A stretch of 64,000 nt of DNA from Thalia democratica (lineage: Eukaryota), in assembly GCA_965202585.1 (NCBI GenBank), contig OZ241829.1, positions 21,948,001-22,012,000 of the forward strand, written 5' to 3'. Shown one piece after another: positions 736-37,630 of this stretch. The notes beneath the pieces are model-generated. The model searched no databases. It saw nothing but the letters and a program-made list of their open reading frames with translations, and was not told the DNA's origin. How positions within the stretch are numbered: position 1 is the first letter of the stretch; each line of letters begins with the position of its first letter. A program made the translations under genes and the position numbers.

Positions 736-2851
736 TTACAAACAAGAGCTAACTTTAACCGCCATATCCCTCAATGCATCAAAACAGTTTTGTAGAAACT
801 TTGTTGTTTCATAGACCACCCCAATAAGCTCATCATTATCTTCTTGGTCGGCGTAAACATTGTTCATTGTCTGGTTCAATTCGTCATAGACTTTATTCAA
901 AGAGCTTAGATGGTCGTTCAGCTCTTCCTGACTTTTTCAAATTATAGTTTTGTCAGTATCTCCAGTTTGTACTGATTGTTTCAACTGGTCAAACAAACGT
1001 TTATAAGATTGTAACACCCAACTCACACCGTAGTAGAGATCTCCAACGAGGTCGAAAGGGCTGATCCCAGAATCTGAGCTACTTTCAAAGAACCTTGTTA
1101 CCAAAACACCATCATTCAAGCTGTCAGAGATCACTTGCCAATGAAACTTTTCTATTTCGTACAGCTGGTTTATAAAACCATTGCTTTCAGTACTGTCAAT
1201 ATGCTTCAGGTGATTAGTTGTGAGCGTTCCCAAAACATCCTTTGAAGGCTTATTTTCTTCTAACATTTTTCTAATAATTTCAAAACGACTGAGCATAGTT
1301 GTTTCTACATCGGTTGTAAGTTCATTTAAAAATAGCCCCGACTTTACACAATCTTTTTCAGCATCTTCTTTTGTTTTATCCTTAGGTTGATTTTCAATTG
1401 TTTTACCAACATCGCTCAAATTTTCTTTTGAGGTTTTATTCAAATCTTCATTACTATTTGCATGAGAAGTCTTTTCGTTTGTTGTTGGATTTACAGTTCG
1501 AATTAGTTTTCCAGTGTCTGGTGACGCAAAACTGTCTGCAATTTTTGTTTCGTTTGTTTCTAGGGATTCTTCTTCTGAGTCCTTTCTTTTATCAGATGAA
1601 TTTTCAGAGGCTTGTCTAATTTCATAATGCTTTGCTACTTCATTATGAATGTTATTTACGTTTTCTTCAAACAAGTTTTGTTTGTCATCCTGAACTAAAA
1701 CATCATTATTTTTGATAATCTCTGATTCAGTATTAGCTGAAGTTGCTAACAGTTTTACTTTTTCTTGATTCACAAACAGTTTATTACTTATGTTTTTGTC
1801 ACTACTATTCACAGCTAGTTGTACTCCTTTACAAGCCTGACTTTTCATCAACTTTAGATTACAAGACATATTTTTGTTATCACTAAAGTTAGGGTCACTT
1901 ACTAACTCCAAAGTATTTTTAATGGTAACAGCTTTCTTATCTTTTGTATCACAGGTAAAAGTTTTCACAGTCACTGAGGCTTCTCCTCTAATGTGTCTTT
2001 CTTCAGATAAGTTTTCAGACACTCCTTCATTTCTGTGATGCCTTGCTGTTTGATCATGAAATTTAGTTACCTTTTCTTCAATCGGGTTTTTCGTTTTTCT
2101 TTGAATCAAAATATCATTGTCATCGATAAAGTTTTTCTCAATGTTAGCTGACGTCTTAACAACTCTTCTTTTTTTGGGTTCAAAAACACATCTAATTTTG
2201 AAGTAGTGTTCAAATTTTCATTACCAGTTGCACTGGTAGACTTCTTGTTTATTGTTGAATTCACAATATTAGTTAAATTCTCACAATCCGGTGCTATAAA
2301 ACTTACAATTTGGTTTTCTTCATTTGTCACTAGGGCTTCTCCTCTGAAGTGACTTTCTTCAGATATGTTTTCAGACACTTCTTCATTTCTGTGATGATCA
2401 TGAAATTTAGTTACGTTTTCTTCAAACGGGTTTTTCGTTTCACCCTGAATCAAAATATCAGTGTCATCGATGATCTTCCCCTCAATGTTAGCCAACGTTG
2501 TTAACAACTTTTCTTCTTCTGAAGTCAAAAACAAGTCTTCACCGTTGTTTGAATTTTTGTCACTACTATTTACAGCTAGTTGTACTTCTTTATAAGCCTG
2601 ACTGTTCAAAGACTTAAGACTACAAGACATATTTTTGGTATTGTTAGGTTCACCTACTGACTCCAAAGTATTTTTAATGGAAACAGCTTTCTTACCTTTT
2701 GTATCACAGGTAACAGTTTTAACAGTTTTTGAACCAACTTCTTTGTTGTTGTAGAAAAGTAATGAAAAGCACCAACTGTCACATACAGGCCAGCAAAACC
2801 TAGAACGATTTTGCTCAAATTTACACCCAACTTGAACGAAATTTTAATCAT
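736..2851 (-). pseudogene. Family A copy 1: disrupted, chimeric signal-anchor protein gene
   Basis: ORFs 2654-2851, 2106-2666 and 937-2109 align to the intact paralog at 31235. There is a 4-nt deletion just after the hydrophobic anchor, a second frameshift near 2110, and a GGA>TGA stop at 937-939; homology continues to TAA at 736-738. Confidence 0.85.
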
Positions 2852-5800
2852 TTTACAAAATTCCTATGTCAAAGTATTAAACTTTTTATACATAACTTAA
2901 ACTACTGTTTAAGTAAAGCATTAAGGTATGTAGAGCTAAGTTTTTATTTAATACAAAATTATTTACAGTATTAAAAGTATTTTGTTTTAAGTCAAGTTAG
3001 TTAATGTGTATGATAAGAAATAAAACTTCTCTTCAATTTTTCATTTTGCTAGTGTTAATTTATTCAATTATTTCTACTTCTTTTTTTCAACTGTGCAATA
3101 AAAATTTTAAAAGTTTGTATTTTCTGCTTAGCTAACTAACCACTCCTAAAGGTAAATTAAGTTTAGTTTTAAAGGCTGTAAATAAATCAATATAAACTTT
3201 ACTTTGTCAATTTAAACAATATTTTAATAAAACAATAAGAATTTTTCAGTTTCAATTATAATACTTTTTGAGTGTAAGTCAGTGATTTTTTCATTGTTAG
3301 TTAAAATAAAAATAAGGAGTGTTTTTATCTATAAATTGAAACTAAATTATAAAATTGACCAAAATAAGACTTTGTTTTAATGTTTAAACAAAAAATTATT
3401 ATAAGCATTGCACAATAAAAAAAAATTTGATGAACAAATAATGTACAGATGTTTAAGAAATTGTTTGAATAATATTTTACATACTTAACATTAAAAACAA
3501 GAAATTGAAAACATTTCTGTAAAGAATGAAAAAAACTTCATAAATATTTAGAGAAATAAAATAATGAAATCCAAAAAATCGCCTTTACCTTATATAAGGC
3601 TGCAGAACTCTACTTTATAACAGTTTTAAAAACTAAAAAGCCATGTATCTTTAAACAAACGTTTAAAGGTAAAACGAGCCGTCAAAAAAACTAAACCAAG
3701 AAAAAAAAAACAATTTTAAGATATTTTACATTAAAAAGAACTCCCTGTTAAATTAAGTGAATTTAACAACAATGTAAAATATCAGAAACAAAACAATTCT
3801 GAACATATAAAGTAAAATGAGCTAAAGCTTTATAATTCTACAGGTAACAACAAAATGTTGAAGTAATACAAATGCTAATTTTAAATTGGTCTTAAACCTT
3901 GTACTACTTTACTTTTTTAGAAAATTTAATAATTTTTTAGTTGAAACTTATGATAAAAGTTTAAAAGCACTAACTTACTTAATGTTAAAATACACTGTTA
4001 AATTTGAGCAAAAAATACTTTGTTTATGTTTAGACATTATGATAAACTTTTTAGGTTAAATGCTATGATTCTCAAAGCTTTATAAATATAGCACAGTAAA
4101 ATACTATATAACCAGGGTTTTTAGAAAATGATTTACAAACTGTTTTTACTACTATATATTCACAATAAAATTAGCTATGAGTTTCCAATTAAAAATTGTG
4201 TAGTTATACCAAATCTAGATTTATATGTCACACAAATTAACCATAAAGTTGAATAAAAAAAGGTTATGATAACTTACTTTTCAAAACAGAAGTTCTATAA
4301 AGCTTGTAAAAATTTAGTGTTTGTTAATGGAAAATTTTTAAGATGCATCATTTTAGTTTGTACAATCAGATTAAATTTTAAGTTTCACTTTGAAAAACCT
4401 TGTTAAAGTAACAATAAAATTTTATAACAACCGTATGTTTGTTTATAAATGCTAGTTTAAAGATTTGTTTAACCTTATGTACTTGCAATTTCTTTTGAGT
4501 TTAAACGATGTTCAAAAGAGCTTACCCGTAGAAGTGAACAACTTGTAAAGCCTTTTTAATTTATAATATTATCTTGTTGTTGTAATTTATTTTGACAACA
4601 ATTAGCTATTGTGACTTAATAGTATGTTTAAACTTTTTGATTGCATTACACAATATTTATGAACTTTAAATAAATAGTAATCAACGGTTGCTAAAAAAAA
4701 AAGTATGAACGAAACAATTTATTTGAAAAAAGAACTGCATTTTAGTTTATCATCTGTTAAAACACTTTTGGAAAATCATTACAATTTTTTTACGAATGTT
4801 TAAATTTTTTTATTCAAAGTCTAATTCATATAGTGATAAACACTTTAACTTTAAAACAGTTTTCAGGGTTTTATCTTTTCGTTTTAAAACTATAGTAATA
4901 AAAAAAATATTATTTAGTTGTAGTTCTAGCCAGCTTAAAAATTAACATAAAAACACTTATTACAATTTATGATTTCAATTAACGTTAAAAAACAGCATAT
5001 TTTTGAAAAATATAGCTTGTAGAAAATTAAAAAATTAAGGAATAAAAGTTTAAACAATATTAAACAGTTTGTAAATAAAAATAAGTAAAATATTATATAT
5101 TTTTTTAAATATCAACCGAAAGTAAAAACTCAAAAGTTAGTATTAGTGTTAATATTTTGAATTAAATCTATCATGAAACTGGATTTAGAAATGAATTTTG
5201 TTTTCCTATTTTTTGTCGTCTAGCAACACTGAGTGATCACTTATATACCACTGGCTTCAGAAGTTTGAGTCTCTTGGAAGTAGGTTTTAGTGATATCTAT
5301 ATCTAAAGTACGTTTCGATAAGTTAAATTTAAAAAATAAACAACTCATGTTGACACAAGAGTTTTTTACGAAATACATGAAACTTAAAAAAAAACCTTAA
5401 TTGTTACGAAAAAAACTAGCTCTAATTTAAACCTCTTTTTCAGTTACTTTTAATTATACTATTGATTTATCAACCGAATCGTTATTGTCTACTGTTTTTT
5501 GTCTCTCAATAAACTTAACTACTAAACTGTTGTTTTTTTTTTTGAAGAGCTGAAAAACTTCGAACCGACGAAAGTTTCCGAGCACGAGTGCAGGAACTTT
5601 GGGTGAAGATCAAAAAGTGCCCACCTAATATTTCTACCTAAATTGCTTGCGGGCCGAAGTTAATTTAAATAAATTTAGTACTCAATAAAAGCAAAAATAT
5701 GATATAAGACATGCTACCATTTAGCACTAATAGTTTCATTACTAAATCAAAAGCTTAATTGTAAGTTTCCACTGCAAAAACTTTATTTTGATTTGATTAA

Positions 5801-9330: not shown

Positions 9331-11394
9331 AAGTTAACACTTAAAAAAAAAAAATTACTTTTTAAATAAGTGAATTTGACAATAAACTCGATTTAACGTC
9401 TCAAGATAAACTTTTTAGAGTTTTTAGAAAAAACCAAGATCATAAATTTGCCTGAGCTATTCAGATAATAATTAAAGCTAAATTGACTTTACTTTTTACT
9501 AAATGCTATAGTATTCAACACTTAGAATGGTATTTGTTTTGCTAATTAATTATCGAAGGAGAAAATACGGTACAAAATCTTAATCTAACCAAAATGAAGC
9601 GACAAAACAGATAATATTAGATGTAGTAAAAAAATAGATGCTTTTTTATAGCTGTTAACTTTAAATATTTTTAATTTGTAACTTTCGAAACCTCTGAAAA
9701 CCATTACTGTACTAGAGCAACAGTATTTAACTAAATACTCAAGTTATTTTAAAAGCATATAAAATTATACCATTTATTTATTACAACTCAAGTTGAATAA
9801 ACTTTGAGTATCTGAAACAATGTTTAAAGTCTATTATTATAGCAAAAACAGAGTTTTTTAATAAGCAAGTAACATTAAGAAAACTTCAAAAGTAAAGATT
9901 TCTATACACTGAGAAAACGTTTATATGGTTTAGCTTAAAGTTCGGCAGTCGAGTAAGTAATTTACGATTTTCTCGAGTAAATCGGGTAACTACGGTTTTA
10001 TTAAAAGCGTTTTAAAACTGTTGTAATGAACTTTTTTGATTAAATTTTCAAGATATACTTTGAATAATATACTGATAGTATTTATCAGTAGTGGTTTTAA
10101 CATTTATAAATAACTAAAGTTTACAGTTAGATAAAAGAATTAAGTACCATATGGTTTTTAATTCTAAATCAAATATTATTTTCTGTCGAATGTGTTTTCG
10201 TTTAATTTACATTTTGGATTATTTCTTATCAGAACTCGCAAAGTAAAATATCTTCTAGGTGTTTAATTTACTTAAACCTCAGTAAGGTCACTCACAGGTA
10301 AGCTCAGTTCAGTTTAAAATCTTATTTTAAAAGATCAGGCTTAGTCTGTATTTTGTTTTTCTAAATTTCTTATCTACTAAGCTTATACTGTTAATTTAAA
10401 GATTTTTTACTAATAATTTTGTTTTTAACTGTGAAATAGGTAGTTTTGGTTTAAAGTTTGAATTTACGTTCGTGTTGGTAATAATTAGAAAAAAGTTATT
10501 GTTTTTTTTTGATGATGTTAACTTGAAGTTTTAAGGTTTTGTTTTGGGTAAGTTTATGGAGCTCTAAGTGCAGAAGTCTATTTTACAATAAACATGTTAT
10601 TATATAAGGTTATTATGTGCTAAGTTAAAGTTATTTTCAGCAAACATATAGATGTTGTTGATTCTTAACTTAATTGTGTAGTAAATGACTTGTGACCTCC
10701 AGGGTTTAAAGCAGTTTACATTTTTATTATTTTTCCATTTTTTAATTTTATTTTGTTAGTGTGTACTTTTGAGGAGACTGATAGTAGTATTAGTTTAACA
10801 CTGCAATGAATAATTATTCACAAAATATTCTATTGGATTTTATACATAATCATTCAAAAACAAACTGTGATCACTATATTAAATTAATATTAAATAGTCT
10901 ATACAAACTTTACTTAATGGTAACTTTAATACCATAAAATAAAAATTGTAGATATAAGTACGAAACGAGTTAGTTAACCTTTTTGAAATTTCTATAAAAT
11001 TTAAGCTACTAAAGTTGTCAACAGTATTTAAAATAGCTATCGTATTGAAAAAAGATAGTTTTAAAGAGTATAAAATTTTCAAATAATAAAGCTTAATTTA
11101 TTTTTATTAAAATAGAAGTATTTAGTTGGTACTACAGTTTGAAATATTGTAAAAATTTGAAGTTTATTTCAAAAATTAATATAGCTGATTTAGATCAAAA
11201 AGAAATTACATTATTATTTAATGGAAACTTTAGTTTGATCATTGTACCTAACTACTAACTTTAAGTATCAAAATACAACTTGAAACTAAAAAGTTTTTGA
11301 AAAGTATACTACCTTAAAATAATGAATTTGTTAATTACATTTTTTTTTTCACTTTATTTTCAGTTTCTACTACATAATAACTCAAACTTTTACT

Positions 11395-13960: not shown

Positions 13961-14669
13961 AGGAGCTTTACGATTTAGAATGATGTACAAAACTATTCTA
14001 ATTAGACTGTCTTGTTTGTGTTGTATATTTAAACGTAGGTTCAAAAACATGCTTCCAAAATATTTGTTGCCTTTTAGACAATTTTGTTTAAGTGTATCTA
14101 GAATTAACTTTTATACATGCTTGACTTTGTAAAACAGATCCAATAAAATATTATTTTTAAGCATTAAGTTTGTTTTATTATTTAGATCTGTTAGAAGTTC
14201 ATCAAATATTATCTAATATTCAAATTGTTTGATTTCAATAAACTACTTCTTATCAAACTAAAGGAAAGTGATAAGATCTAAAAATTAAACTTCTTAAAAC
14301 TTATGTTTTTAAACATACTAACGTATTTTTCTTAAAGTTAATATTCGGGTTAAATTTTTTAATTACTGGTGTTTTGCAATATTTAAAATTTAAATGCAGA
14401 CTTGGCTTCAAATTTATTTGATCAAATAACGAAGAAATAATTTTTTAAGTACTTGTTGATAACAATTTTATGTGATTATATGAAATTTTGCTGTCTTTGA
14501 AGTTCAATAAAAACATGCTGGTATGTTTACTTATTAACACCTTTATCTAAAAAAATAACAATGTTAAGTTAATATACCAATGAAAACTTTTAGAAGTAAA
14601 ACAAAATCTCTAAAACAAGTTTAATTTAATATAATCATTTATATATATAAAAAATCACACTAAAATGAT

Positions 14670-15144
14670 TTATTCACAATAATTTAATAATGTTTTTACG
14701 GCGCTTAACAAGTTTTGCGTTTCCTTCCGGCGGCTTCTGCTGGCTAAATTTTGTATTCTGAAAAAAATAAAAATTATTTAAAAATATTTTGATAATTATT
14801 TTCTTATTGCAGAAATATATCTAAATAGATAATTAATCTCAATACTTGATTTTAATTTTGAAGGAAACTGTTTTAAAAGTTTGTCTGATTTTTTCTGTCA
14901 TGAAAATTAAAAAAACATATTTAAGTTTATAATATTTTATAAATTAAGATTGCCTTAACGACAGACTATATCCTAATATTTATTACTATATACATTAGTT
15001 AAAACAAAACTAACCAGAAACTTCAATTTTCCTCGCTGGGGATTGGCTGGTTTTTATCACGTGTTCAACAATTCCGTTTGTGACGACACAACTGACTTGT
15101 TTGCCGTCGTCATCACGACTGACGTCATAAGTGAATGGTTGGTT
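14670..15144 (-). pseudogene. Orphan 3' exons (second half of an Ig domain plus last exon) of the Sushi-Ig gene
   Basis: Exon 15015-15144 encodes NQPFTYDVSRDDDGKQVSCVVTNGIVEHVIKTSQSPARKIEVS, paralogous to 53856-53985. The next exon starts at 14757. No upstream exons are present; a partial tandem copy lies at about 15210-15290. Confidence 0.75.
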
Positions 15145-16043
15145 CTAAAAAATGTTTGATACTTATTAAAAAAATCATGATAAAAGAAATATTGTTCAGA
15201 ATTTTACAAATTTTAACTGTCGTCATTTTTACTGACGTCATAAGTAATTGATTTGTTCTAAAGAATGTTTGATATTTATAAAAGGAAATTCATGATATTA
15301 AAAGTGTTTTATTTTTAATTTTACAATATTTTTAATTAAAAAATGATAATTCAATATAGTAAAGTGCTAGATATATCGGTTTTGAAGACTTAAAAGTTCA
15401 GCTTAATTATAAAACAAGAGAATTCCTGATCTTCCCTTGTACTTATCGAAACTCCCCCTAATGACTGTTTTTTTTTAATTATTAAATTGTTGTTGAACTA
15501 GCTTTTGCATCGTCACAAGTTGTTGCAATACAAACAGTGAAATGGAAAACACTTTTATTATGTCATTGTCATCGTTTTTGAAATTTGAGTGAAATGTAGC
15601 TTATATAAAATAGTATTAAGCATCTTAAACATTTGAAATAAAGTATTATATATTTTATTAATTAGTTATACCCTAAATCAGTAAGATATATGACGTTTTT
15701 AACAAGTTTTATTTTGCAATAAAAAGGTCATTTTTATAGGGATTCCTCTACCAACTTAGCTGAAACTGGTGGATTTTTTATAACTTTTAGGGTGTTAATC
15801 ATGGTACAAAACAATAGCCTTTGATGCTTTTCTCCCAAATTATTTTGCTTTAAAGAAATATTTTTTATAAGTGCTTGGCCGATATTTTGAGAGAGAAAAA
15901 GTTCAACTTTTTATCAAAATAGAACTATATTACACAGAAAATAGACAGTTTTAAATTATACTAAGTTTTCTTTAGTTATAATTCTTAAAGATTAGTTTCA
16001 ATGGTTTTAAGTTTTTGCTCAGACTAAAATTATCGTACAAAGA

Positions 16044-19108: not shown

Positions 19109-20495
19109 ATGATTAAAGTTTCGTTTAAGTTGGATGTTAGTTTGAGCAAAATGGTTCTCGGTTTTGCTGGTCTGTCTGTGGCAATTGGTGCTTTTCATTA
19201 CTTTTCTAAACAGAACAACAAACAAGTTGGTTTAAAAACTGTTAAAACTGTTACCTGTGATACAAAAGGTAAGAAAGATGTTATCATTAAAAATACTTTA
19301 GAGTCAGTAAGTGAACCTAGCATTAGTGATACCAAAAATATGTCTTGTAGTCTGAAGTTGTTAAAAAGTCAGGTTTATAAAGAAGTACAACTAGCTGTGA
19401 ATAGTAGTGACAAAAACTCAAACAATAGTGAAGGACTGTTTGTGAATCAAGAAGAAGAAAAACTGTTAGCAACTTCAGCTAATACTGAATCAGAGATTAT
19501 CAAAAATAATGATGTTTTAGTTCAGGAAGAAAAACAAAACTTGTTTAAAGAAAATGTAAATAATATTCATAATAAAGCAGCAAAGCATGATGAAATTAGG
19601 CAAGCCTCTGAAAATTTGTCTGATAAAAGTAAGTACTCAAAAAAAAAAACCCCTAAAAACGAATGATACCAAACTAATCGACAGTTTTGCGTCATCAGAT
19701 GCTGAAAAATTAAATCATATTGTGAATCCAATAACAAACGAAAAGACTTCTAATGCAAACAGTGATGAAAAATTGAACAAAAATTCAAAAGTAGACTTAG
19801 TTTCAGATAATGCTAACGATGTTGGTAAGACAATTGAAAATCAACCGGAGGATAAAACAAAAGACGATGTTAAGAAAGAGTGTGTAAAGTTAGGACTATT
19901 TTTAAATGAACTGGCAACGTTGGTAGAGACAATTATGCTCAATCGTTTTGAATTTTTTAGAAAAACGTTAGCAGCAAGTAAGCCTTCAAAGGATGTTTTG
20001 GGAATGTATTCAACTAATCACCTGAAGCATATTGACAGTTCTAAAAGTGAAGGTTTTATAAACAAGCTGTATCAGATAGAAAAGTTTCATTGGCAAGTGA
20101 TCTCTGACAGCTTGGGTAAAGGTGTTTTGGTAACAAAGTTCTTCGAAAGTAATTCAGATTCTGGGATCAGCCCTTTTGACCTCGTTGGAGATCTCTACTA
20201 CGGTGTAAGTGGGGTGCTAAAATCTTATAAATGTTTGTTTGACCAGTTGAAACAATCGGTACAAGCTGGAGATGCTAACAAAAATGTGATTGGAAATAGT
20301 CAGGAAGAGTTGAACGACTACCTCAGCTCTTTGAATAAAGTCTACGACGAACTGAACCAGACAATGAACAGTGTTTACGCCGACCAAGAAGATAATGATG
20401 AGCTTATTGGGGTGGTCTATGAAACAACAAGTTTTCTAGAAAATTTTTTTGATGGACTGAGGGTTATGGCGGCTAAAATTAACTCTTATTTGTAA
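19109..20495 (+). CDS. Family A copy 2 (type I); single +1 frameshift in an A11 run, possibly intact
   Basis: ORFs 19109-19666 and 19587-20495 together match the 453-aa paralog. The only break is 11 A at 19639-19649, where the paralog has 10 nt (GAAGAAAGAA). Confidence 0.8.
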
Positions 20496-20939
20496 TTGGA
20501 CAGTTACAAATCCCCCGGATAAACACATTTATGTTTGTTATTTTTCAGACAGTTCATTATATTGAAATACACTTTTCTATGTTTTTATTGTCTGCATTTT
20601 TAGTTATATATAAACAAAGAAAAAGTGTTCGTGTATAAAAAAGTTTTTAATTTTTTTTTATCAAACTAATATAGTACTGTTTACAATCTCAGTATTTTTC
20701 TAAACTTAATTAATTTAGTGTAGTATCTTACTAATGATGCATTATTAAGGAAAGTTAAGTTTAACAATTAATTTATTAACTGGTTTGCAGATAAGGTAAT
20801 ATAAAACACAACATAAGTTGTTTAAAATTTTTGTACGGTTAGGGTATAATGAATTAAGAGCAAGTATAGGAAGAGTTCGTAAGTTGTTGTACTACTATTA
20901 ATAGAAAAATGTGTAAACCTATAACTGCTTTATAGACTA

Positions 20940-23328: not shown

Positions 23329-24033
23329 ATGTTATTTATAATACACGAACTCAGTAGAATAATTAAAATTTCAATAAACTTGGTTATTAGTTTGAGCAAA
23401 ATACTTCTTGGTTTTGCTTACTTTTCTCTGGCAGTTAGTGTTTTTCATTACTTTTTTAGAAAGAAAAACAAACAAGTTGGTTTAAAAAATGTTAAAACTT
23501 TTACATTTGATACAAAAGGTAAAAAAGATGTTGGCATTAATAAAATCTTGATCTCAGTAAATGATCCCAACTTATGTGATATCACAAATACTTGTAGCAG
23601 TCATAAGTTTTCAAACAATCAAACTTCTAACAAAGGAATCCTAGTATTAAATACTAGCGACATAAACTGTAATAGCAGTAATGAACTGTTGGTGAATCAA
23701 GAAGAAAAAAAAATATCAACAATATTAGCTCAAACTTATACAGATGTTAATAACCGTGATGCTTTGGAAGAAATGCAAAACATGTTCGAAGAAAAAGTAA
23801 ACAATGTTCAAAATGAAACAGTAGTACATAATGAAAAATTATAATTCTCTGAAAATTTTTCTGAAAGTAGTAAAGACGCCAAAAGAGAAACCCTTGTACC
23901 ATTTGAAGCAAACAAATTTGATTGTAATGTGACACTAGAGGCTAGAAACATAGAGAATATTGTGAATCTTCTTCAATGTGACAAAACTTCGAAATCTTTA
24001 TTTCTAAAAGAAACAAAAGTTAATTGCACTTAA
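23329..24033 (+). pseudogene. Family A copy 3: most divergent, 3'-truncated
   Basis: IIKISINLVISLSKILLGFAYFSLAVSVFHYF anchor with the ancestral ATG changed to ATA; in-frame TAA at 23842-23844; homology ends near 23960 with no C-terminal domain. Confidence 0.8.
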
Positions 24034-26340
24034 AATTAATTTCTACATTTAAATGAAAGTATCTGAATATTAAAACATAGTACAGTGCTTACTCATTTAC
24101 CCGGCCATATTTGGCTATTTTTGTAAGTTAGGCCGGATAAGTGCCTTTGGCCAGATAAGAACAAAACATCGTTGTTCTTATAATCTACCTAACTAATACT
24201 ATGCAATGCATATGATAAAACTTAATTATCTGTTAATTTAGCTTATTTCAATTTTCCTCAACGAAACAAAGAACTAAAACAGACGAAAAAAAAAAAAACG
24301 AAACGTTGTAAAGTTTAAAATTGATTTAACAAAAACAAACAACATCGTAAACAGTCGTACTAACATTGGGTGTTGGGACGCTTTCTTAAAAAGTAAAGAA
24401 CGGAAGTTTGTTTGACATAAATATTCTGATTCTTAACATAAGACTCTCGGAATTGGATAATTTTTGAAACACTTTCTGGTGAAGATTTTTTTCGTTTGAT
24501 CCGGCCGACTGTGTACTAATACTAAGGTATGTGTTGGCAAAATTCTAAAATACAACCCGATTTCATCGCAATCAAAACATTTTTGTTTAAACTATCCCTT
24601 GGTTTAATTTGTATTCTTATATATAAATAGCGCGAAAATATGAACTATAACATTAAGTTTTATATTTTTCTTAATTATCACGTTACTATAAACTGCTCGA
24701 TTAGAGTTATTGAAGTCAACTTTGTTAACTATTGAAGTAAAGCTTTGATTTGAGCTAGATTAAATAAACCTATTTCTCGAACAAAAAATGCGACCGAACG
24801 ATAAAGGAAGCACTATATTGATCATATTTTTAATTAATTCACACTTGTTTAAATCATCATTTTAATTTGTTACCTTAATAGCATTTTCGTTTATAATGTA
24901 TATGCAAATCAGTTTAGAGTTTCCTTTCACTAACAAACTTTTGTTGTTTAACTTTTATTGGTTTGTATTTCAAAACTAGTAACAGTAGTTCTCTAGATGT
25001 TCATTGTTTGTGATATTTAGTACAAGTTAAAGCTTATTATAAAATGCTAACCTTTTAGAAAAATTTACAAATAAGTCATTTAACATTTAAAAAATTAAAA
25101 AAAAAAGAACAAGCAGTTTTGTCAATAAAGTACCTATAATAACTTATTTAGTCAACAAAGTAAAGTTTTAGATTGAAAAATGTATTCACTTTATTTCCTT
25201 AACTGTCTTATTTTAATATATTTCTAATTTATATTACAATGTAAGCATATTCAATAGAAATTTATCCTAAAACGACTTCTTCGTTTTTGTGTGAAGATAT
25301 AAATTTTTTTGATATCTTATCTTAATCTACAGGTATCATTAATTAAAAATTATTTCTTTACATATTTATGTAAAACAAACGTACATCAGTATTCATTGAA
25401 AATTAAAAAAAAAAGCTTATTGTATTTTTCGAATTTTTATTGTTTTGATAAAACAAAAACTTTCTGAACAAATTTATATTATTTGCTATTTTCTAGTGGT
25501 AAACTATATATTTCAAACTTAATGAAGTATTTAAAATTTATTAGTTGGGCAAAGAAATGTTTTTATTTAAATTTGTCTCCACTATTGTTTTGTAATCGAT
25601 GTATTATATGCACGTAATACGCAATACAAAATGCAAAATAAAAGTTATTATAGAGTTTATAAACTAGTTAAAAGTCCCTAACTTTTTTCTATTAGTGGTA
25701 CTAAGATCTTTTTCAACATACAACTATACTCAACTAAGAAATACGTTTTAATTGTAATATAAATTTTTATATTCCTATTGTTCGACTTATATTTAACTTA
25801 AGTTTTTTACTTATGAAAATTCTTAAAGTTTAATAACTTAATTTAAGGTTTATAGCACTGATAGTTATAAAATACAGCATCTCTTTTGGATTGAAGCTTT
25901 AAGTTTTTTTCTACTATATACATACCAGCTCTTGATGTATTTGACCCTTAACACACATAAGTTTACCAAGAAAGATTCAGCAACTTTGGTTGTTTTATAT
26001 CAAATAACCTGCAAACCAGTTTGTAAAAAAAAAATTAAAGTATGAATGCTACTTGAATTTTGTTAAAAATTTTGCTTTGTAAAACATCATTAGTGATAGT
26101 GCAATAAAAACTATATTCGAGTTATTAATAGTACTGAAATATTAAACAATATATATATTATTTATGATATTAATATAAAAAACGTTTTTTATAAACGAGT
26201 TTTTTTTTATTCTTTATATAACTAAAAAGCACACAAGTAAAACAAAACAAAATATAACAGAAAAACTATCAGCAAAAAAACTAAATAGATGTATAAGCAA
26301 CTTAAATGTTTTTATCTAACAGATATGTCATTGTCCACTT
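23950..26340. repeat. Arm of inverted segmental duplication (partner about 37630-40030)
   Basis: Continuous reverse-complement match, e.g. tacagtgcttactcatttacccggcc vs ggccgggtaagtgaggaagcactgta; it extends through family A copies 4 and 6. Confidence 0.9.
24080..24520 (+). mobile_element. Possible Tc1/mariner (pogo/Tigger-like) non-autonomous remnant
   Basis: TA-CAGTGCTTACTCATTTACCCGGCC...CCGGATAAGTG resembles Tigger-type termini; matching second TIR not confirmed. Inverted copy at about 39460-39900. Confidence 0.35.
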
Positions 26341-28078
26341 ACAAATAAGATTCAACTTTTACCGCTTTAATCCTCAAATCTTCAAAAAAAATTTCTAGAA
26401 AACTCTTTACTTTGTAGACCAATTCAATAAGCTCATCGTTAACTTTTTTGTCAGGATAAACACTATTCATTTTCTGGTTCAATTCGTCGTATGTTTTATT
26501 CAAAGATTTTATGTGGTCGTTTAGCCAAAAATTACAAAATCCAATTTTAAGTTTGTCACCATCATCTGTTTCAAGCGCTAGTTTAAACTGGCCGAATAAA
26601 CACTCAACAGAAACCAATGCTTCAACCAATTTATAATAAAAATTTCGAACTAGATCAAAAGGGCTGATTCCAGAATCTGAATTATTTTCAAAGAACCTTG
26701 TTAACAAAACACCATCATTCAAGCCGTCAGAGATCATTTGCCAATGGAACCTTTCTACTTGGTACAGCTTGTTTATAAAATTGTTATTTACAGTACTGTC
26801 AATGTGTTTCAGGTGATTAGTTGTAAGTTTTTCTAGTAGGTCTTTTGAAAACTGATTTGTTTAAAAAATTTTTTTAAAAGTTTTAATACGATTTAGCATA
26901 ATTGTTTTTATCTCTGTAATATATTTGTTTGATAATGATTCAACTTTCATACAATCTTTCTTAATATCATCTCTAGTTCTATTCTTTGGTTGATTTTTTA
27001 TAGTTTCATCAACTTTATTGATATTTTCTGAAATTAGATTTAATTTTGAAGTAGTGTTAAACTTTTCATTACCAGTTGCACAAGTAGACTTCTTGTTTAT
27101 TGTTGAATTCACAATATTAGTTAAATTTTCACCATCCGGTGCTACAAAACTTACAATTTCGTTTTCTTCATTTGTCACTAGGGCTTCTCCTCTAATGTGG
27201 CTTTCATCAGATAAGTTTTCAGACTCTTCTTCATTCCTGTGATGCCTTATTGTTTGATCATGAAAACTATTTACGTTTTCTTCAATCGGGTTTTGCGTTT
27301 CACTTTGAATCAAAATATCATTGTCATTGATAATGTTTCTCTCAATGTTAGCTGACATTGTTAAAAACTTTTCTTCTTCTGAGTTCAAAAACAGGTCCAA
27401 TTTTGAAGTAGTGTTCAAGTTTTTATTACCAGTTGCTCTGGAAGACTTTTTAGTTGTTGTTGGATTCACAATATTAGTTAAATTTTCAGCATCTGGTGCT
27501 ACAAAACTTTTAATTTTGTTTTCTTCATTTGTCACAGGGGCTTTTCCTCTAATGTGACTTTCTTCAGATAAATTTTCAGACAGTTCTTCATTTTTCTGAT
27601 GCCTTGCTGTAAGATCATGAAGTTTAGTTACGTTTTCTTTAAACGGGTTTTGCGTTTCGCCCTGTATCAAAGTATCATTGTCGTCGATGATTTTTCCCTC
27701 AATATTATCCAACGTTGTTAGCAACGTTTCTTCTTCTGGGTTCAAAAAGAGTCCTTAACTATTGTTTGAGTTTATATCACTACTATTCACAGCTAGTTGT
27801 ACTTCTTTACAAGCCTGACTTTTTAACAACTTCAGACTACAAGACATCTTTTTGGTATTACTAAAGTTAGGGTCACTTACTGACTCTAAAGTATTTTTAA
27901 TGTCAACAGCTTTCTTATCTTTTGTATCACAGGTAACAGTTTTAACAGTTTTTGAACCAACTTGTTTGTTGTTCATTGTAGAAAAGTAATGAAAAGCACC
28001 AACTGTCACATACAGGCCAGCAAAACCAAGAACAATTTTGCTCAAACTTACACCCAACTTGAACGAAATTTTAATCAT
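26339..28078 (-). pseudogene. Family A copy 4 (type II) with two in-frame TAA stops and a duplicated 119-aa internal repeat
   Basis: ORFs 27755-28078, 26861-27745 and 26339-26737 are all in one frame; both stops (27755-27757 and 26861-26863) replace GAA codons of the paralog. Confidence 0.85.
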
Positions 28079-30240
28079 TTTACAAAATTCCTATGTCAAA
28101 GTATTAAACTCTTTATACATAACTTAAATTACTGTTTAAGTAAAGCATCAAGGTATGTAGAGTAAAGTTTTATTTAACATAAAACTATTTACAGTATTAA
28201 AAGTATTTTGTCTTAAGTCAAGTTAGTTAATGTGTATGATAAGAAATAAAACTTCTCCTTAAATATTCATTTTGCTAGTGTTAATTAATTCAATTATTTC
28301 TACTTCTTTTTTCAGCTGTGCAATATAAATTTTAAAAGTTTGTATTTTCTGCTTAGCTAACTAACCCTTACTAAAATTAAATTAAGTTTAGTTTTAAAGG
28401 CTGTAAATAAATCAATATAAACTTTACTTCGTAAATTTAAACAACATTTTAATAAAACACTAAGAATTTTTCTGTTTTAATTATAATTATGAGTGTAAGT
28501 CAGTGGTTTTTTCATTATAAGTTAAAACAAAAATTAGGAGTGTTTTTATCTAGAAATTGAAATTAAACTATAAAATTGACCAAAATAAGACTTTATTTTG
28601 ATGTTTAAACAAAAAAGTATTATAAGCGTTGCACAATAAAAAAAATAATTTGATAAAAAAATAAAATACAGATGTTTAAGAAATTTTTTGAATGATATTT
28701 TACATACTTAACATTAAAAACAAGAAATTGAAAACAGCACTTGTAAAGAATAAAAGAAACTTCATAAATAATTAAAGAAATAACACAATGAAATCCAAAA
28801 AATCGCCATTACCTCATTAAGGCTGCAGACCTCTAGTTTATAACAGTTTTAAAAACTTAAAAGCTATGTATCTTTCAAAAAACTTTTAAAGGTAAAACGA
28901 GCCGTCAAAAAAATTTAAAGCAAGAAAAAAAAACAATTTTAAGATATTTTATATTAAAAAAAAACTCCCTGTTAAATTAATTGAATTCAATAACAATGTA
29001 AAATATCTGAAATAAAACGATTCTGAACATATAAACTAAAATGAGCTAAAGCTTTATAATTCTACAGGTAACAACAAATTGTTGAAGTAATGCTAATGCT
29101 GATTTAAAATTGGTTTAAACCTTGTACTACTTTACATTTTTTTGAGGATTTTATAACCTTTTAGTTGAAACTAATGACAAAAGTTGTAAAGCACTAACTT
29201 ACCTAATGTGAACCAAATACACTGTTAAGTTTGAGCAAAAATTTATATTGTTTATGTTTAGACATTATGATAAACTTTTTAGGTTCAATATTATGATTCT
29301 CAAAGCTTCATAAACATTGCACAGTAAAAAACTATATATCCATAGTTTTTAGAAAATAATTTACAAACTGTTTTTACTACTATGTATTCACTAAAATATT
29401 AGCTATGAGTTTCCAATTAAAAATTATGTAGAAATACAAAGTCTAGATTTAAATGTCATACAAATTAACCATAAAGTTGAATAAAAAAAGGTTATGATAA
29501 CTTACTTTTCAAAACAGAAGTTCTATAAAGCTTGTAAAAATTTATTTTTGTTAATGGAAAATTTATAAGATGCGTCATTTTAGTTTGTACAATCAGATTA
29601 AATTTTAAGTTTCACATTGAAAAAACCTTGTTAAAGTAAATATAAAATTTTATCACAACCATATGTTTGTTTATAAAAGCTAGTTTAAAAATTTTTTTAA
29701 CCTTATGTACTCGAAATTTCATTTGCGTTTAAACAATGTTCAAAAAAGCTTACCCGTAGAAGTGAACAACTTGGAAAGCCATTTTAATTTATAATTTTAA
29801 CTTGTTTTTTAATTCATTTTGACAACAATTAGCTATTGTGACAATAAACAGTGTGTTTAAACTTTTTGATTGCATTACACAATATTTATAAAATTTAAAT
29901 AAATACTAATCAACGGATGCTAAACAAAAAAGTATGAACGAAACAAGTTATTTGAAAAAAGAACTGCATTTTAGTTAATCAACTGTAAAATCACTTTTGA
30001 AAAATCATTACAATTTTTTTACGAATGTTTAAATTGTTTTATTGAAAGTCTAATTCATATAGTGATTTTAACTTTAAAACAGTTAGTTTTCAGGTTTTTA
30101 TCTTTTCGTTTTAAAACTATAGTAATAAAAAAAATATAATTTAGTTGTAGTTCTAGCGAGCTTAAAAATTAACTTAAAAACACTTATTACAATTTATGAT
30201 TTCAATTAACGTTAAAAAACAGTATATTTTTGAAAAATTA

Positions 30241-30360
30241 CTTAATACCTGGGTATTACGTTGTAAAAAAGATATACGATCGGAGAGAAAGAGTATTTAG
30301 AGGCAAAAAAAGAATTGAGTATCTTGTCAGATGGAACGGGTATAAATTGTTAGTTTTTTT
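30241..30360 (+). pseudogene. Chromodomain gene exon 1 fragment (no start codon)
   Basis: PGYYVVKKIYDRRERVFRGKKRIEYLVRWNGY followed by intron 1 sequence. Confidence 0.85.
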
Positions 30361-30477
30361 AATTTAAGTTACGTAATATCTCATTTTATGTAAAGTTATT
30401 GTTTCTAACCGAGTGTCTTTAATTTTTAACTAATACAAGTTATTCTTTTATTAATATCTTAGTAAATAATAAACAAT

Positions 30478-30680
30478 GGACTTTACCACCGATCAAAAAC
30501 AACAGCATCCGAGACAACCTACAACCGGTTTCGTTCTATTTAGGACTCATCAGGCAGGCATAGTCATGAGAAACTAAATTTTTCATTCTACTCTCAAACG
30601 GTGGCTTCAGTACTTCGTGTTTAAGCTCACTTAGTTAGAGCTCAGCAGCGGTATCTTGAGACTATTCCTGCCTAATGAGT
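30478..30680. mobile_element. Second copy of the double-hammerhead element, truncated in the right arm
   Basis: Near-identical to 11681-11883; ends at cctgc-CTAATGA-gt, then switches to family A upstream sequence. Confidence 0.8.
30517..30559 (-). ncRNA. Minimal type I hammerhead ribozyme motif, intact core
   Basis: Same sequence as 11720-11762 (acctacaaccggtttcgttctatttaggactcatcaggcaggc). Confidence 0.8.
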
Positions 30681-31234
30681 ACTACAATGCTTATTATACT
30701 TTTTTGTTTAAATATTAAAACAAAATCTTACTTTGGTAAATTTTAACATTTGTTTCAAATTTCTAGATGAAAAAACTCTTTATTTCTTTAATTAATGATG
30801 AAAAATCACTGGTTTACACTTAGAAAGTTATAGTAATAATACAGAAAATTCCATTGTTTTTGATAAAATATTTAAAAATGACAAAGTAAAGTTTATACTG
30901 CTTTTTTATAACCTTAAAAACTAAATTTACCTTTAGTAGTAGTTAGTTAGCTAAGAAGAAAAAAATGAATTTTTTTAGATTTATATTGCACAGCTGAAAA
31001 TAAAACTAGAAATATTTGAGTAAATTAGCACTAGCAAAAGATTAAAACTATGCGAGGAGCTGTTTAATGTTCTTATCTAAAACATTAATTTGCTTGACTT
31101 AATACCAGTTACTTTTAATAATATAAATAATTCTTATGTTAGAAAACTTGACTCTACCTACGTTGATGGTTTATTTAAACAGTCAGTTCAGATATATATA
31201 AAGTTTAATACTTATGATTTAGGAATCCTGTATA

Positions 31235-32596
31235 ATGATTAAAGTTTCATTTAAATTGGATGTTAGTTTGAGCAAAATCGTTCTTGGTTTTGTTGGCTTG
31301 TCTGTGGCAATTGGTGCTTTTCATTACTTTTCTAAACAGAACAACAAACAAATTGGTTTAAAAAATGTTAAAACTGTTACATGTGATACAAAAGGTAAGA
31401 AAGCTGTTGACATTAAAAATACTTTGGAGTCAGTAAGTGAACCTAACAATACCAAAAATATGTCTTGTAATCTGAAGTTGTTAAAAAGTCAGGTTTATAA
31501 AGAAGTACAACTAGCTGTGAATAGTAGTGACAAAAACTCAAACAATAGTGAAGGACTGTTTGTGAATCAAGAAGAAGAAAAACTGTTAGCAACTTCAGCT
31601 AATACTGAATCAGAGATTATCAAAAATAATGATGTTTTAGTTCAGGAAGAAAAACAAAACTTGTTTAAAGAAAATGTAAATAATATTCATAATAAAGCAG
31701 CAAAGCATGATGAAATTAGGCAAGCCTCTGAAAATTTATCTGATAAAAGTGGGGACTCGAAGAAAGAACCCCTAGTAACAAACGAAACAAAAATTGTTGA
31801 CAGTTTTGCGTCAACAGATACTGGAAAACTAACTCGAACTGTGAATCCAACAACAAACGAAAAGACTTCTATTGCAAACAGTAATAAAAAGTTGAATAAA
31901 ACATCAAAAGTAGACTTAGTTCCAGAAAATTTGAGCGATGTTGGTAAGACAATTGAAAATCAACCGCAGGATAAAGCAAAAGACGATGTTAAGAAAGAAT
32001 GTGTAGAGTTTGGACTATTTTTAAATAAACTCTCAACCGAAGTAGAAACAACTATGCTCAATCGTTATGAATTTATTAGAAAAAAGTTAGAAGCAAATAA
32101 GCTTTCAAAAGATGTTTTTAGAAGGCTTACTACTAATCAGGTGAAGCATATTGACAGTACTAAAAGTCAAGATTTTATAAACAAGCTGTACCAAATAGAA
32201 AAGTTTCATTGGCAAGTTATCTCTGACAGTTTGGGTAAAGGTGTTTTGATAACAAAGTTCTTCGAAAGTAGTTCAGATTCTGGGATCAGCCCTTTTGACC
32301 TCGTTGGAGATCTCTACTACGGTGTAAATGGGGTACTAAAATCTTATAAACGTTTGTTTGACCAGTTAAAACAATCGGTACAAGCTGGAGATGATAACAA
32401 AACTATAATTGGAAATAGTCAGAAAGAATTGAACTACCATTTAAGCTCTTTGAATAAAGTCTATGACGAATTGAACCAGACAATGAACAGTGTTTATGCC
32501 GACAAAGAAGATAATGATGAGCTTATTGGGGTGGTCTATGAAACAACAAAGTTTCTACAAAACTGTTTTGATGGATTGAGGGATATGGCGGCATAA
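31235..32596 (+). CDS. Family A copy 5 (type I): intact 453-aa predicted signal-anchored protein of unknown function
   Basis: Single-exon ORF with hydrophobic IVLGFVGLSVAIGAFHYF flanked by Lys, an N/K/E/S-rich linker, and a conserved C-terminal region EKFHWQVISDSL..DSGISPFDLV. The last few residues are lost relative to copy 2. Confidence 0.85.
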   Translation: MIKVSFKLDVSLSKIVLGFVGLSVAIGAFHYFSKQNNKQIGLKNVKTVTCDTKGKKAVDIKNTLESVSEPNNTKNMSCNLKLLKSQVYKEVQLAVNSSDKNSNNSEGLFVNQEEEKLLATSANTESEIIKNNDVLVQEEKQNLFKENVNNIHNKAAKHDEIRQASENLSDKSGDSKKEPLVTNETKIVDSFASTDTGKLTRTVNPTTNEKTSIANSNKKLNKTSKVDLVPENLSDVGKTIENQPQDKAKDDVKKECVEFGLFLNKLSTEVETTMLNRYEFIRKKLEANKLSKDVFRRLTTNQVKHIDSTKSQDFINKLYQIEKFHWQVISDSLGKGVLITKFFESSSDSGISPFDLVGDLYYGVNGVLKSYKRLFDQLKQSVQAGDDNKTIIGNSQKELNYHLSSLNKVYDELNQTMNSVYADKEDNDELIGVVYETTKFLQNCFDGLRDMAA

Positions 32597-33339
32597 ATTA
32601 GACTTGTTTGTAATTGAACAGCAACACATCTCTCGGATAAAATCATTTACGTTTGTTATGTTTAAGACATTTCTTTTATTGAATTAATTTTTTCTATATT
32701 TTATATTGTTTTTATTGTCTGCATTTTTAGTTATATATATTATAAAAAAACTTTGTTAATAAAAAAGTTTTTATTTTATTTACAACAAATTAATATAGTA
32801 ATGTTTAAAATTCCAATATTTTTCTGTAGTTAAATATTTTAGTGTAGTATGTTACTAATGATGTATTACAAAGCAAAAATAATATTTTTAATCCATAAGT
32901 TTAACAGTTACACTTAAAAACATTTCAAAAACTGGTTTGCATATAAGTTTATATAAAACAACAAAAAGTGCTTAATAATTTAGTGTATGGTTAGGGTATA
33001 ATGACTTAAATGCTAGTATAGGATAAGTACATAAATAGTAGAACGTAAAATTTTCTTAAAAGTTAGAGTTTCAGTATTCTAAACATTCTAGTGTTACAAA
33101 CCTAAAATTAAGTTCTTAAACTTAAAAGTTAAGTTCTTAAGAATTATCATTGTAAGTAAGTTAAATTTGTAAACCTTAAATAAAAATTTAAAAAACTACA
33201 AAGTAAATCATACTAAGAAGAGAATAAAATATAACTTTTCATGTGTAACAAGTTTCGTAAGTTAATTAGTTTTGTCTTTTATCTTCTTTTACAGTTTGTT
33301 AACAAAAAATAAAGTTTTTTAAAAAATACAAATGTGTAA

Positions 33340-34330
33340 AGTATTATAGACTGTCTGCTTTATAGAGAAATATCAAGTTACCAGTGTGCAAATCGATGAC
33401 CGAGAGGTCTTTTTGCGTATCCAGGTCCTTGAATTAAAAAATTTTTGAGCGTTTTTCGTTTTTGTTGAATTGACCACTATAACAAAATCTTCTGTAAAAG
33501 TTCTTAAAAAAGTTAACAGTCCTGTCTCTAAAGTATTAGATGAATTTATTAATCAACATATTGTGAAAATAAATATCTAAAAAACTTAATATTAGCGACA
33601 GTAACTCAAATACTCAAATCAGAATCAAAAAAGATAACAGGCAACTATAGACCAATCATAATTTTATCTAACTCAAATAAAATAAATGAAAAAGTAATAT
33701 ACAATTGTTTATATAGTTTTTTTTACAAAAAATTGATATTTTAAACTGTTCGAAACTTGGTTTTCGATAGGAACCACTCTACTACCATGACTTAGTCTAA
33801 ATTTGTAGAATCTGTTCTGAACAGGTTTGATGAGGGAGAAGCAGTGTGTGAGATATTTCATGATTTAAGTAAAGCATTTGATAGTGTAGATTTAAGGATT
33901 TTGGTAAACAAAATAGAATGTTATGGTGCAAGAGGGAAAGTTGATTTGTAATTGAATTTTACTTGATTGAAAGGGAACAGTATGATAAATTTTGTAGGCT
34001 TAAACTAAAACGTGAAAAAAATAGACGTTGGAGTACCACAAGGTTCAGTCCTAGGACTTATTTTATTTCTTATACACATTAATGACCTACAAAATAATAC
34101 TAGCTCAAGATTATTAAAATTTGCAGACCATACCTTACTTTATATAACACTTAATGAAAACACGTACTTACAAGACAGTGACAACTTTAATTTGAATTTC
34201 AAAAGGTCTCAAATTGGTCTTTAAAAAAGCTATTTGAATATAAATAAACATAGAAGTATTCTATTTTATCCAGTTAAAAAATTTTTTCGAAAAGTATAAA
34301 ATTTAAATTCAAAATAGGTAAATATATTAC
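33340..34330 (+). mobile_element. Degenerate L2/CR1-like RT fragment (duplicate of 20940-21850)
   Basis: DLSKAFDSVD and VGVPQGSVLGLILFLIHINDLQNNTSSRLLKFADHT. Confidence 0.85.
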
Positions 34331-36267: not shown

Positions 36268-37630
36268 ATGATTAAAGTTTCGATTAAGTTAGGATGTAAG
36301 TTGGATGTAAGTTTGGTTCTTGGTTTTGCTGGTCTGTTTGCGGCAGTTGGTGTTTTTCATTACACTTCTAGAATAAGAACAACAAACAAATTGGTTTAAA
36401 AATTGTTAAAACTGTTACCTGTGATAAAAAAGGTAAGAAAGCTGTTACCATTAAAGATACTTTGGAGTCAATAAGTGAGCCTAACTTTAGTGATACAAAA
36501 AATATGTCTTGCAGTCCGAAGTTGTTAAAAACTCAGGTTTATAAAGAAGTACAACTATCTGTGAATAGTATTGACAAAACATCAAACAACAGTGAAGGCC
36601 TGTTGTTAAGAACGTCCGCAAAGATTGAGGGAAAGAATATCGATGACAATGATATTTTGGTTCAGAGTGAAACGAAAAACCCGACTGATAAAATAGTAAA
36701 TAGTTTTCATGATCAAACAGCAAGGTATCACAGAAATGAAGAAGTGCCTGAAAACTTATTTGATGAAAGCCACATTAGGGGAGAAGCCTCAGGGAGAAAT
36801 GAAGAAAACCAAATTCGAAGTTTTGTAGCACCGGATGCTGAAATTTAAATAATGTTCTATATCCAACAACAAACGAGAAGTCTACTTTTGCAACTGGTAA
36901 TGAAAACTTTGACACTACTTTAAAATTAGATCTAGTTTCAGAAAATTTCAATGAAGTTGATAAAACTGTTGAAAATCAACCGAAGAATAGATCAAAAGAT
37001 GATATTACGAAAGATTGTATGGAAATTGGATTATTATCAAACAAATATATTACAGAGATAAAAACAATTATGCTAAATCGTATTAAAACTTTTAAAAAAA
37101 TTTTTTAAACAAATCAGCTTTCAAAAGACCTACTAGAAAAACTTACAACTAATCACCTGAAACACATTGACAGTACTGCAAATAACAATTTTATATACAA
37201 GCTGTACCAAATAGAAAAGTTTCATTGGCAAATGATCTCTGACAGCTTGAATGATGGTGTTTTGATAACAAGGTTCTTTGAAAACAATTCAGATTCTGGA
37301 ATCAGTCCTTTTGATCTAGTTCGAAATTTTTATTATAAGTTGGTTGAAGCATTGGTTTCTGTTGAGTGTTTATACGGCCAGTTTAAACTAGCGCTTGAAT
37401 CAGATGATGGTGACAAACTTAAAATTAGATTTTGTAAGTTTTGGCTAAACGAACACATAAAATCTTTGAATATAATATACGACGAATTGAACCAGAAAAT
37501 GAGTAGTGTTTATCCTGACAAAAAAGATAACGATGAGCTTATTGAAGTGGTCTACAAAGTAACGAGTTTTCTAGAAAATTTTTTTGAAGATTTGAGAGCT
37601 AAAGCGGTAAAAGTTGAATCTTATTTGTAA
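36268..37630 (+). pseudogene. Family A copy 6 (type II), frameshifted
   Basis: ATG at 36268; frameshift right after the anchor (43-aa product); further break near 36848; same in-frame TAA as copy 4 (ATT TTT TAA ACA AAT); C-terminal ORF 37232-37630. Confidence 0.85.

Follow-up and report, generated by a model that had tools for sequence, protein, structure and literature searches.

Six related genes without introns in their coding sequence lie on both strands of one stretch of the genome of the salp Thalia democratica. What do they encode, how did they come to stand together, and could any of them still make a protein? The stretch, called the window here, is 64,000 nucleotides long (G000:C5:21948001-22012000 in an 802-Mb assembly; GC content ~26%, no N). 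An initial annotation, made from the sequence alone, had described the genes as a locally expanded family of predicted membrane-anchored proteins with an unrecognised C-terminal domain. Our preferred reading, to which we give a probability of roughly 0.6, is that the window holds a mostly dead sub-cluster of a lineage-specific superfamily of single-coding-exon genes, whose products have a membrane-targeted tip, a stalk and a helical head. The N-terminal module (the putative anchor) would direct the product to a membrane, serving as a signal anchor or perhaps as a signal peptide that is cleaved off; the stalk would be a spacer, and the head would be a module for binding. Segmental duplication, inversion and recombination between paralogues would have built up the array, which is now decaying, copy 5 being the only member that could still give a near full-length protein.

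Copies in the window and across the genome

The copies were located by tblastn with the 453-aa open reading frame (ORF) of copy 5 as the query. All six were recovered where the initial annotation had placed them, in both orientations and uninterrupted by introns in the coding sequence, as it had said. Five keep a conserved C-terminal region, which by tblastn measures ~200 aa and is missing from copy 3. The proposed division into type I (copies 1, 2 and 5) and type II (copies 4 and 6) is borne out by identities of 78-81% within type I, 50-54% between the types and 87% for copies 4 and 6; a tree agrees, pairing copies 4 and 6 at 100/100, apart from the other three. In the same tree the five head-bearing local copies form one clade at 100/99, isolated on a long branch.

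757..2851, minus strand: copy 1, a chimeric pseudogene, found by tblastn as pieces in three frames (tblastn extent 757-2851)
19109..20495, plus strand: copy 2, type I, with one frameshift and otherwise complete, seen as two overlapping ORFs (tblastn extent 19109-20474)
19639..19649, plus strand: homopolymer of 11 A with the +1 frameshift of copy 2, its sole frame-breaking indel relative to copy 5
23359..23991, plus strand: copy 3, an N-terminal fragment (residues 1-212, 43% identity; the tblastn extent, 23359-23991, covers these 212 aa only)
26339..28078, minus strand: copy 4, a type II pseudogene with TAA at 27757 and 26863 (tblastn extent 26360-28078)
31235-32596, plus strand: copy 5, an uninterrupted ORF of 453 aa, the only open local copy (tblastn extent 31235-32593, as the query itself)
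36268..37630, plus strand: copy 6, a type II pseudogene with two frameshifts and four stops (tblastn extent 36268-37609)

Little of the local cluster is still alive: of its six copies in the window, only copy 5 is uninterrupted, and the other five are broken. Copy 1 joins a type II-like anchor and stalk (2851 down to ~1970) to a type I part (1968 down to 757) that begins at residue 45. Self-blastn puts the switch in homology at 1969/1970, positions 1970-5011, upstream flank included, matching copy 4 with its flank (27174-30238) at 89.6%, and positions 20-1969 matching the region of copy 5 (33339-31366) at 84.8%. This copy has three lesions besides: a loss of 4 nt near 2749, directly past the anchor, a break in the frame around 2106-2190 and, at 939, a TGA. 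Copy 3 has lost both its ATG and the AG upstream of it and has a TAA at 23842. The stalk of copy 4 is internally duplicated, residues 108-228 being present twice, as is the stalk of copy 1. Copy 6 is stopped at 36369, 36397, 36839 and 37106, and the AG of its putative splice acceptor (described below) has become AT. The TAA at 37106 is shared with copy 4, at a position where copy 5 has GAA (residue 286).

Copy 2 is the least damaged of the broken copies: its two ORFs, 19109-19666 and 19587-20495, overlap, and a single surplus homopolymer base separates it from an open frame. The extra A could be genuine damage, or an error made in assembling the homopolymer. Over the gene and its flanks, copy 2 is 89.6% identical to copy 5 in nucleotide sequence, and it retains the ancestral C-terminal hexapeptide. 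Copy 5 has TAA where copy 2 has AAA and thus ends six codons short of the ancestral stop. The C-termini of many family members form a short conserved tail (-SYL, -SLI or -SYF; in others -NLL) that resembles a class I PDZ-binding ending; in the window the tail lies at 20478-20495 in copy 2, 26339-26359 in copy 4 and 37610-37630 in copy 6, and is absent from copy 5 through its early stop.

A seventh copy of the local family lies 2.4-3.3 kb ahead of the start of the window, on the minus strand at G000:C5:21944706-21945642. It is badly degraded, with ~40% identity to copy 5 and at least six stops.

The family is not specifically local, contrary to the initial description. With copy 5 as the query, dozens of intronless ORFs elsewhere in the genome were matched through the first ~100 residues of the query. 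A profile of the 45-residue N-terminus (A3) gave 401 candidates in the genome; all 150 that were scored matched it, ~58 of them with open frames of at least 400 aa. At least 150 anchor-bearing copies are therefore present, in over a dozen clusters. The matches form clusters on C1, C2, C4, C5 and C9, with single places on C7 and C8 and others on several small contigs. Each of 20 further loci that were fetched holds an intact ORF, of 442-823 aa. The top matches to the profile were copies 2 and 5 (E values of 4e-24 and 8e-24), and copies 1, 3 and 4 matched too; copy 6 (~C5:21984268) was not among the 150 places listed, though the tblastn alignment does show its MIKVS... start.

The heads divide into at least four sequence classes. 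The class of copy 5 occurs also at C5:67.45 Mb, at C5:77-79 Mb, on C4 and on one small contig, and proteins from metagenomes have it too. Arrays at C5:72.2-73.7 Mb match the N-terminal profile at E values of 1e-10 to 1e-14, and they resemble the local copies in having the N-terminal module, a single coding exon, the upstream acceptor, a variable stalk, a helical head and a mix of intact and dead members. They differ in that the local head belongs to another sequence class (the head of copy 5 matches the heads at C5:72-73 Mb weakly, with an hhalign probability of 39% and an E value of 3e-4 over 104 columns) and in that the local clade is separate and almost wholly pseudogenised.

Opposite the stalk of two members on C4 lies a 353-aa antisense open frame with 'TEDL'-like repeats (L070:226-1284 and L022:1626-2684, both minus strand), which is probably a by-product of the tandem-repeat stalk.

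Predicted architecture and search for relatives

Copy 5 divides into three parts.

31235..31333, plus strand: N-terminal module, residues 1-33, delimited by the A3 alignment, hydropathy and AlphaFold2 (AF2)
31334..31966, plus strand: stalk, residues 34-244, rich in N, K, E and S and predicted to be disordered
31967..32596, plus strand: all-alpha head, residues 245-453 plus the stop codon, with six helices in the AF2 model

The consensus of the N-terminal module is MIK-x-S-x-K-x-D-x-S ... G-x-x-G-x-S ... G-A-x-x-Y-x-S. Across the A3 alignment, M1, K3, K7, G18, G21, S23 and Y31 are invariant, and Gly27 and Ala28 are nearly so. Residues ~1-14 form a conserved stretch in which hydrophobic and polar residues alternate and which includes a conserved Asp; a hydrophobic helix containing Gly and Ser follows. 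Residues 10-33 are the sole hydrophobic segment of the protein, with a mean Kyte-Doolittle hydropathy of 1.6-1.9 over 19 residues and lysines on both sides, in keeping with the moderately hydrophobic, basic-flanked segment of the initial annotation. The N-terminal flank has a net charge of +1 to +3, and the net charge of the 15 residues past the helix differs by member, from 0 to +4. Of the traits of a signal peptide, the hydrophobic core of 12-15 residues and Gly27-Ala28 fit, while the 14-residue stretch with its Asp ahead of the core does not.

In the full-length AF2 model of copy 5, residues 10-33 form a helix, residues 34-244 have a predicted local distance difference test score (pLDDT) below 30, and the remainder, 245-452, is helical; there the block means of pLDDT are mostly 61-85 and dip to 45-49 at 334-350. 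Structure modelling of the head had been proposed with the initial annotation; predicted alone (AF2, alignment A1 of nine sequences), the head of copy 5 again gave six helices, with a pLDDT of 72.6 and a predicted template modelling score of 0.75. The stalk, which is prone to repeats, contains 2.3% Pro and 18% Ser plus Thr, unlike a mucin. In the head, a single Cys is invariant and no N-glycosylation sequon is conserved.

The C-terminal domain, which had been called unrecognised, stayed so: Pfam, the Protein Data Bank (PDB) and five fold libraries yielded no relative, and no confident match to a housekeeping or transposon protein appeared in the Pfam, PDB profile or fold searches. Nothing rose above the Pfam cut-off for copy 5 or for 15 other members and relatives representing every head class. 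The Pfam family DUF6756 (PF20541) was rejected at 15.7 bits against a gathering threshold of 27 (E value of 0.015, over 49 residues only). A profile search of PDB sequences returned designed coiled coils only, and an ESM Atlas search by features gave no usable match. By shape, Foldseek (pdb, afdb_clusters and viral libraries), VIA-align (48,161 chains, exhaustive) and ESM Atlas returned generic helical bundles only, with best scores of Z 9.5 in VIA-align, for which the tool's own advice puts the meaningful level for helical bundles at ~Z 13, and E values of 0.03-0.08 in Foldseek. These bundles, which include PhoU-like, BAR-like, Borrelia and trypanosome surface and designed proteins, share with the head an all-alpha make-up and long antiparallel helices; they differ from a true match in that all scores fall under the tool's meaningful level, none stands out and no sequence signal accompanies them.

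Sequence relatives came from metagenomes. Across 5.8 billion clusters and 1.84 billion representatives, sequence searching gave one full-length protein (P0001) and eleven short fragments (P0002-P0012), all traced to or listed under ENA assemblies. An HMM search of the representatives returned 11 short fragments of metagenome origin. When copy 5, P0012 and alignment A4 served as queries in word-indexed searches, metagenome fragments were again the only matches. By exact look-up, none of ten family proteins was in a collection of 15 billion proteins, and copy 5 was on no recorded contig. P0012, encoded on a 988-nt contig (L052, ENA ERZ27289397), is a remote homologue of the head (hhalign probability of 89%, E value of 2e-6); its composition is much less AT-biased, and no anchor is visible on its short contig. 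Because it matches the head profile and is less AT-biased, the head occurs in at least one other organism. The superfamily was absent from every annotated proteome searched. In a paper on Salpa genomes, which gives their sizes as 742-901 Mb, a search by terms found no mention of such a family (PMC10686999). The GH6 domain, a tunicate marker, gave no match in the present genome, but neither did it in control genomes, so this negative carries no weight.

Selection, membrane topology and decay

Ratios of nonsynonymous to synonymous substitution rates (dN/dS), another proposed follow-up, were obtained throughout as Nei-Gojobori pairwise estimates. Whole-gene values among the type I copies were 0.45-0.52, well below 1. 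For the head alone, values were 0.39-0.48 within type I and 0.33-0.49 between type I and type II. When the comparisons with copy 5 were divided by part, dN/dS rose from the anchor (0.10-0.36) through the head (0.42-0.49) to the stalk (0.58-0.65). Intact paralogues in four other clusters broadly repeated this order, with 0.24-0.56, 0.28-0.66 and 0.63-0.86 for anchor, head and stalk, respectively. Values below 1 indicate purifying selection, which is moderate here, and no pairwise value points to diversifying selection. Ratios near 1 were found for copy 3 against copy 5 (~1.0) and for the heads of copies 4 and 6 (0.9-1.13, at a synonymous divergence [dS] of 0.05), the latter indicating neutral drift since the two split, so that type II was already dead at its last duplication. 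The birth-and-death turnover proposed at first is evident. A role in conflict, immunity or the germline, suggested along with it, finds no direct support, pairwise dN/dS being 0.3-0.5 for heads and 0.1-0.6 for anchors.

In three of the four other clusters, dS was 0.1-0.36 in the anchor and 0.6-1.1 in the head. With anchor dS so far below head dS, the apparent invariance of the anchor may partly reflect gene conversion or exchange of heads. The clusters at C9:43.69-44.22 Mb, C1:39.09-39.19 Mb and C5:72.2-73.7 Mb (loci L034-L072) show this climb in synonymous divergence from anchor to head, which suggests 5′ gene conversion or head swapping between paralogues; in the C9 cluster, dS was 0.31 in the anchor, 0.23 in the stalk and 1.09 in the head.

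Several observations weigh against our preferred reading. Membrane insertion of the helix is predicted to be marginal, a simple Hessa sum giving +0.8 to +3.9 kcal/mol, and the conserved Gly-Ala near residues 27-28 would also suit a signal-peptidase site; for both reasons, 'anchor' remains a putative name. Copy 5 is without the C-terminal hexapeptide that copies 2, 4 and 6 keep and is possibly impaired too. Nine of the ten variants in its coding sequence are nonsynonymous, and because half of them match copy 2, they may come from cross-mapping. The other head classes align with that of copy 5 weakly (hhalign E values of 1e-4 to 1e-3), so the heads may not all have a common origin.

Where would the protein go? 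The mitochondrial outer-membrane or endoplasmic reticulum (ER) anchor of the initial annotation is compatible with the hydrophobicity and charge of the module; the module could equally be a type II anchor or a signal peptide that is cleaved, and on present evidence readings with the bulk of the protein facing the cytosol or placed on the exoplasmic side or secreted appear about equally likely. In the first, which we hold tentatively, the module would be a signal anchor with the N-terminus out and the C-terminus in, at the mitochondrial outer membrane or the ER, and the protein would serve as an adaptor on the organelle surface. The moderate hydrophobicity of the helix, the lysines right after it together with the net charge of 0 to +4 that follows, the charged, E/K/N-rich and Pro-poor stalk, and a head with a single invariant Cys and no conserved sequon count in favour of such a protein, although the two sides of the helix differ little in charge, and by an amount that is not the same in all members. 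Proteins of the Tom20/Tom70 type likewise have one moderately hydrophobic N-terminal helix, basic residues after it and their bulk on the C-terminal side. They share no sequence or fold similarity with the family, in which 14 conserved residues, an acidic one among them, come before the helix; to our knowledge, the conserved Asp and alternating pattern of these 14 residues are unlike those of Tom20- or Tom70-type anchors, which speaks against a cytosol-facing arrangement.

The alternative, rather unlikely in our view, is a secreted or surface-displayed family in which a cleaved signal peptide or a type II anchor puts the variable stalk and head outside the cell. A hydrophobic core of only 12-15 residues followed by the conserved Gly-Ala would suit this, as would an N-terminus whose conservation, over 150 copies or more, greatly exceeds that of the remaining protein, and an anchor dS below that of the head in three of the four other clusters, a pattern of families with homogenised signal regions; the weak top fold matches include pathogen surface helical bundles, none of them significant. 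Conotoxin precursors, amphibian antimicrobial peptide precursors and trypanosome mucin/MASP proteins combine a conserved signal with a hypervariable mature region, and they resemble the family in their near-invariant targeting N-terminus, divergent remainder, large tandem arrays and many pseudogenes. The likeness ends at the mature part, which here is 400-800 aa long, Cys-poor and helical; pairwise dN/dS is below 1. The pre-core region with its conserved Asp, the lack of a conserved sequon and a stalk that is not rich in Pro, Ser or Thr also count against secretion or surface display.

Our preferred reading leaves copy 5 as a possible source of protein. It may instead be that every copy in the window, copy 5 included, is non-functional and that its open frame is the recent survivor in a gene graveyard. 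The five broken neighbours, the AAA-to-TAA change that shortens copy 5, the position of the local clade alone on its long branch and the preponderance of nonsynonymous variants in the coding sequence all fit this idea. We nevertheless consider it rather unlikely. At 8.8% stops per random codon, the value for the base composition of the window, a frame of 453 open codons has a chance of ~9e-19, and the other five frames across the same stretch hold 20-64 stops each. The dN/dS of copy 5 against copies 1 and 2 lies well under the ~1.0 of copies 4 and 6 and of copy 3. Moreover, DNA contigs of three runs carrying two organism labels show the coding sequence of copy 5 with no indel and no stop.

Since it is nearly dead, the local cluster is in itself of modest interest; it illustrates how an array dies, as members come to have a stop codon in common, form a chimera or lose an acceptor. 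Salps are ecologically important chordates whose genomes have been little explored, and a family in which at least 150 genes combine an invariant targeting tip with a head that cannot be recognised ranks among the larger lineage-specific inventions visible in this genome. As a speculation that we regard as a long shot, the 33-residue module could be a lineage-specific targeting or oligomerisation device that sets well over 100 divergent heads, of at least four classes, on one membrane surface, as a new repertoire for self/non-self, pathogen or gamete recognition in pelagic tunicates. Duplication, paralogue recombination of the kind seen in the chimeric copy 1, and the death of genes would maintain the variety of such a repertoire.

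Gene boundaries, duplicated blocks and flanking repeats

The sequence around the genes bears on how they are transcribed and how the array arose.

31221..31234, plus strand: splice-acceptor-like TTTAG/G, then a 12-nt leader before the ATG of copy 5, from the upstream alignment
32758..32763, plus strand: AATAAA downstream of copy 5, found by inspection of the sequence
27174..30238, no strand assigned: duplicated block, 5′ gene part with ~2.2 kb of upstream flank, the counterpart of 1970-5011 (89.6%)
23956-27368 versus 40022-36602, inverted: duplicated block, 89.8% by self-blastn
18566-20882 versus 30680-33034, no strand assigned: duplicated block, 85% by self-blastn

We aligned the 100 nt upstream of the ATG for the members listed, 35 of 36 having sufficient upstream sequence. 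In all 35, from every head class, a run rich in pyrimidines closes with a YAG that lies 12-27 nt ahead of the ATG, and the same feature is present on the metagenome contig (L031) that codes for the closest outside relative. In the window it is kept in copies 1, 2, 4 and 5, changed to AT in copy 6 and lost from copy 3. The YAG would most simply be a 3′ splice site, serving either an intron in the 5′ untranslated region or spliced-leader trans-splicing, a process known in tunicates. A common putative acceptor just before the ATG offers a direct handle for locating transcripts of the superfamily. On the other side of the genes, AATAAA occurs 127-161 nt past the stops, at ~127 nt in copies 1, 4 and 6.

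By self-blastn, the window is a mosaic of direct and inverted duplicated blocks that reach 2-4 kb past the coding sequence. No ORF for a transposase, integrase or reverse transcriptase was found in the ORF listing for 1-40 kb, and the sequence just past the stop codons holds no remnant of a poly-A tail. Reads of three runs, whose kind is unrecorded, spread evenly across genes and spacers, as DNA does; in these runs the depth over the coding sequence of copy 5 is ordinary, without the spike of a high-copy element, while two short repeats flanking it reach ~45,000-fold. Because the blocks carry as much as 3-4 kb of flank, no mobile-element ORF is present and depth over the coding sequence is ordinary, we conclude that the array was built by segmental duplication, inversion and recombination between paralogues, and not by retroposition or transposition.

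An origin of the genes as transposon or viral cargo or relics, or as retrocopies, is very improbable: their intronless coding sequence in an intron-rich genome, their high copy number and the very deep repeats and hammerhead ribozymes around copy 5 would fit such an origin, but they have no match in Pfam or the viral fold library, and the co-duplicated flanks, the acceptor conserved upstream of the ATG, the missing poly-A remnants and mobile-element ORFs and the ordinary read depth led us to reject processed genes as well as a transposon or viral source.

Two type I hammerhead ribozymes were matched on the minus strand, at 11720-11762 and 30517-30559 (34.9 bits against an Rfam gathering threshold of 34). 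Both lie inside a repeat of ~440 bp (11449-11887 versus 30248-30684, 89.5%), and the second is ~700 bp upstream of copy 5 in a bin of ~45,000-fold depth, which suggests that the repeat is of very high copy number, retrozyme- or SINE-like. The other depth spikes near copy 5, at 33322-33518 (~45,000), 28988-29184 (~3,000) and 33716-33912 (~1,800), are high-copy repeats as well.

A second set of paralogous blocks sits between copies 1 and 2 and recurs after 43 kb (10732-15208 versus 43693-54051, 66-78% identity, both orientations). It includes an ORF at 13517-13960, and the chromodomain gene described in the initial annotation spans 43638-45650. This second set suggests that another duplicated gene family is interleaved with the array.

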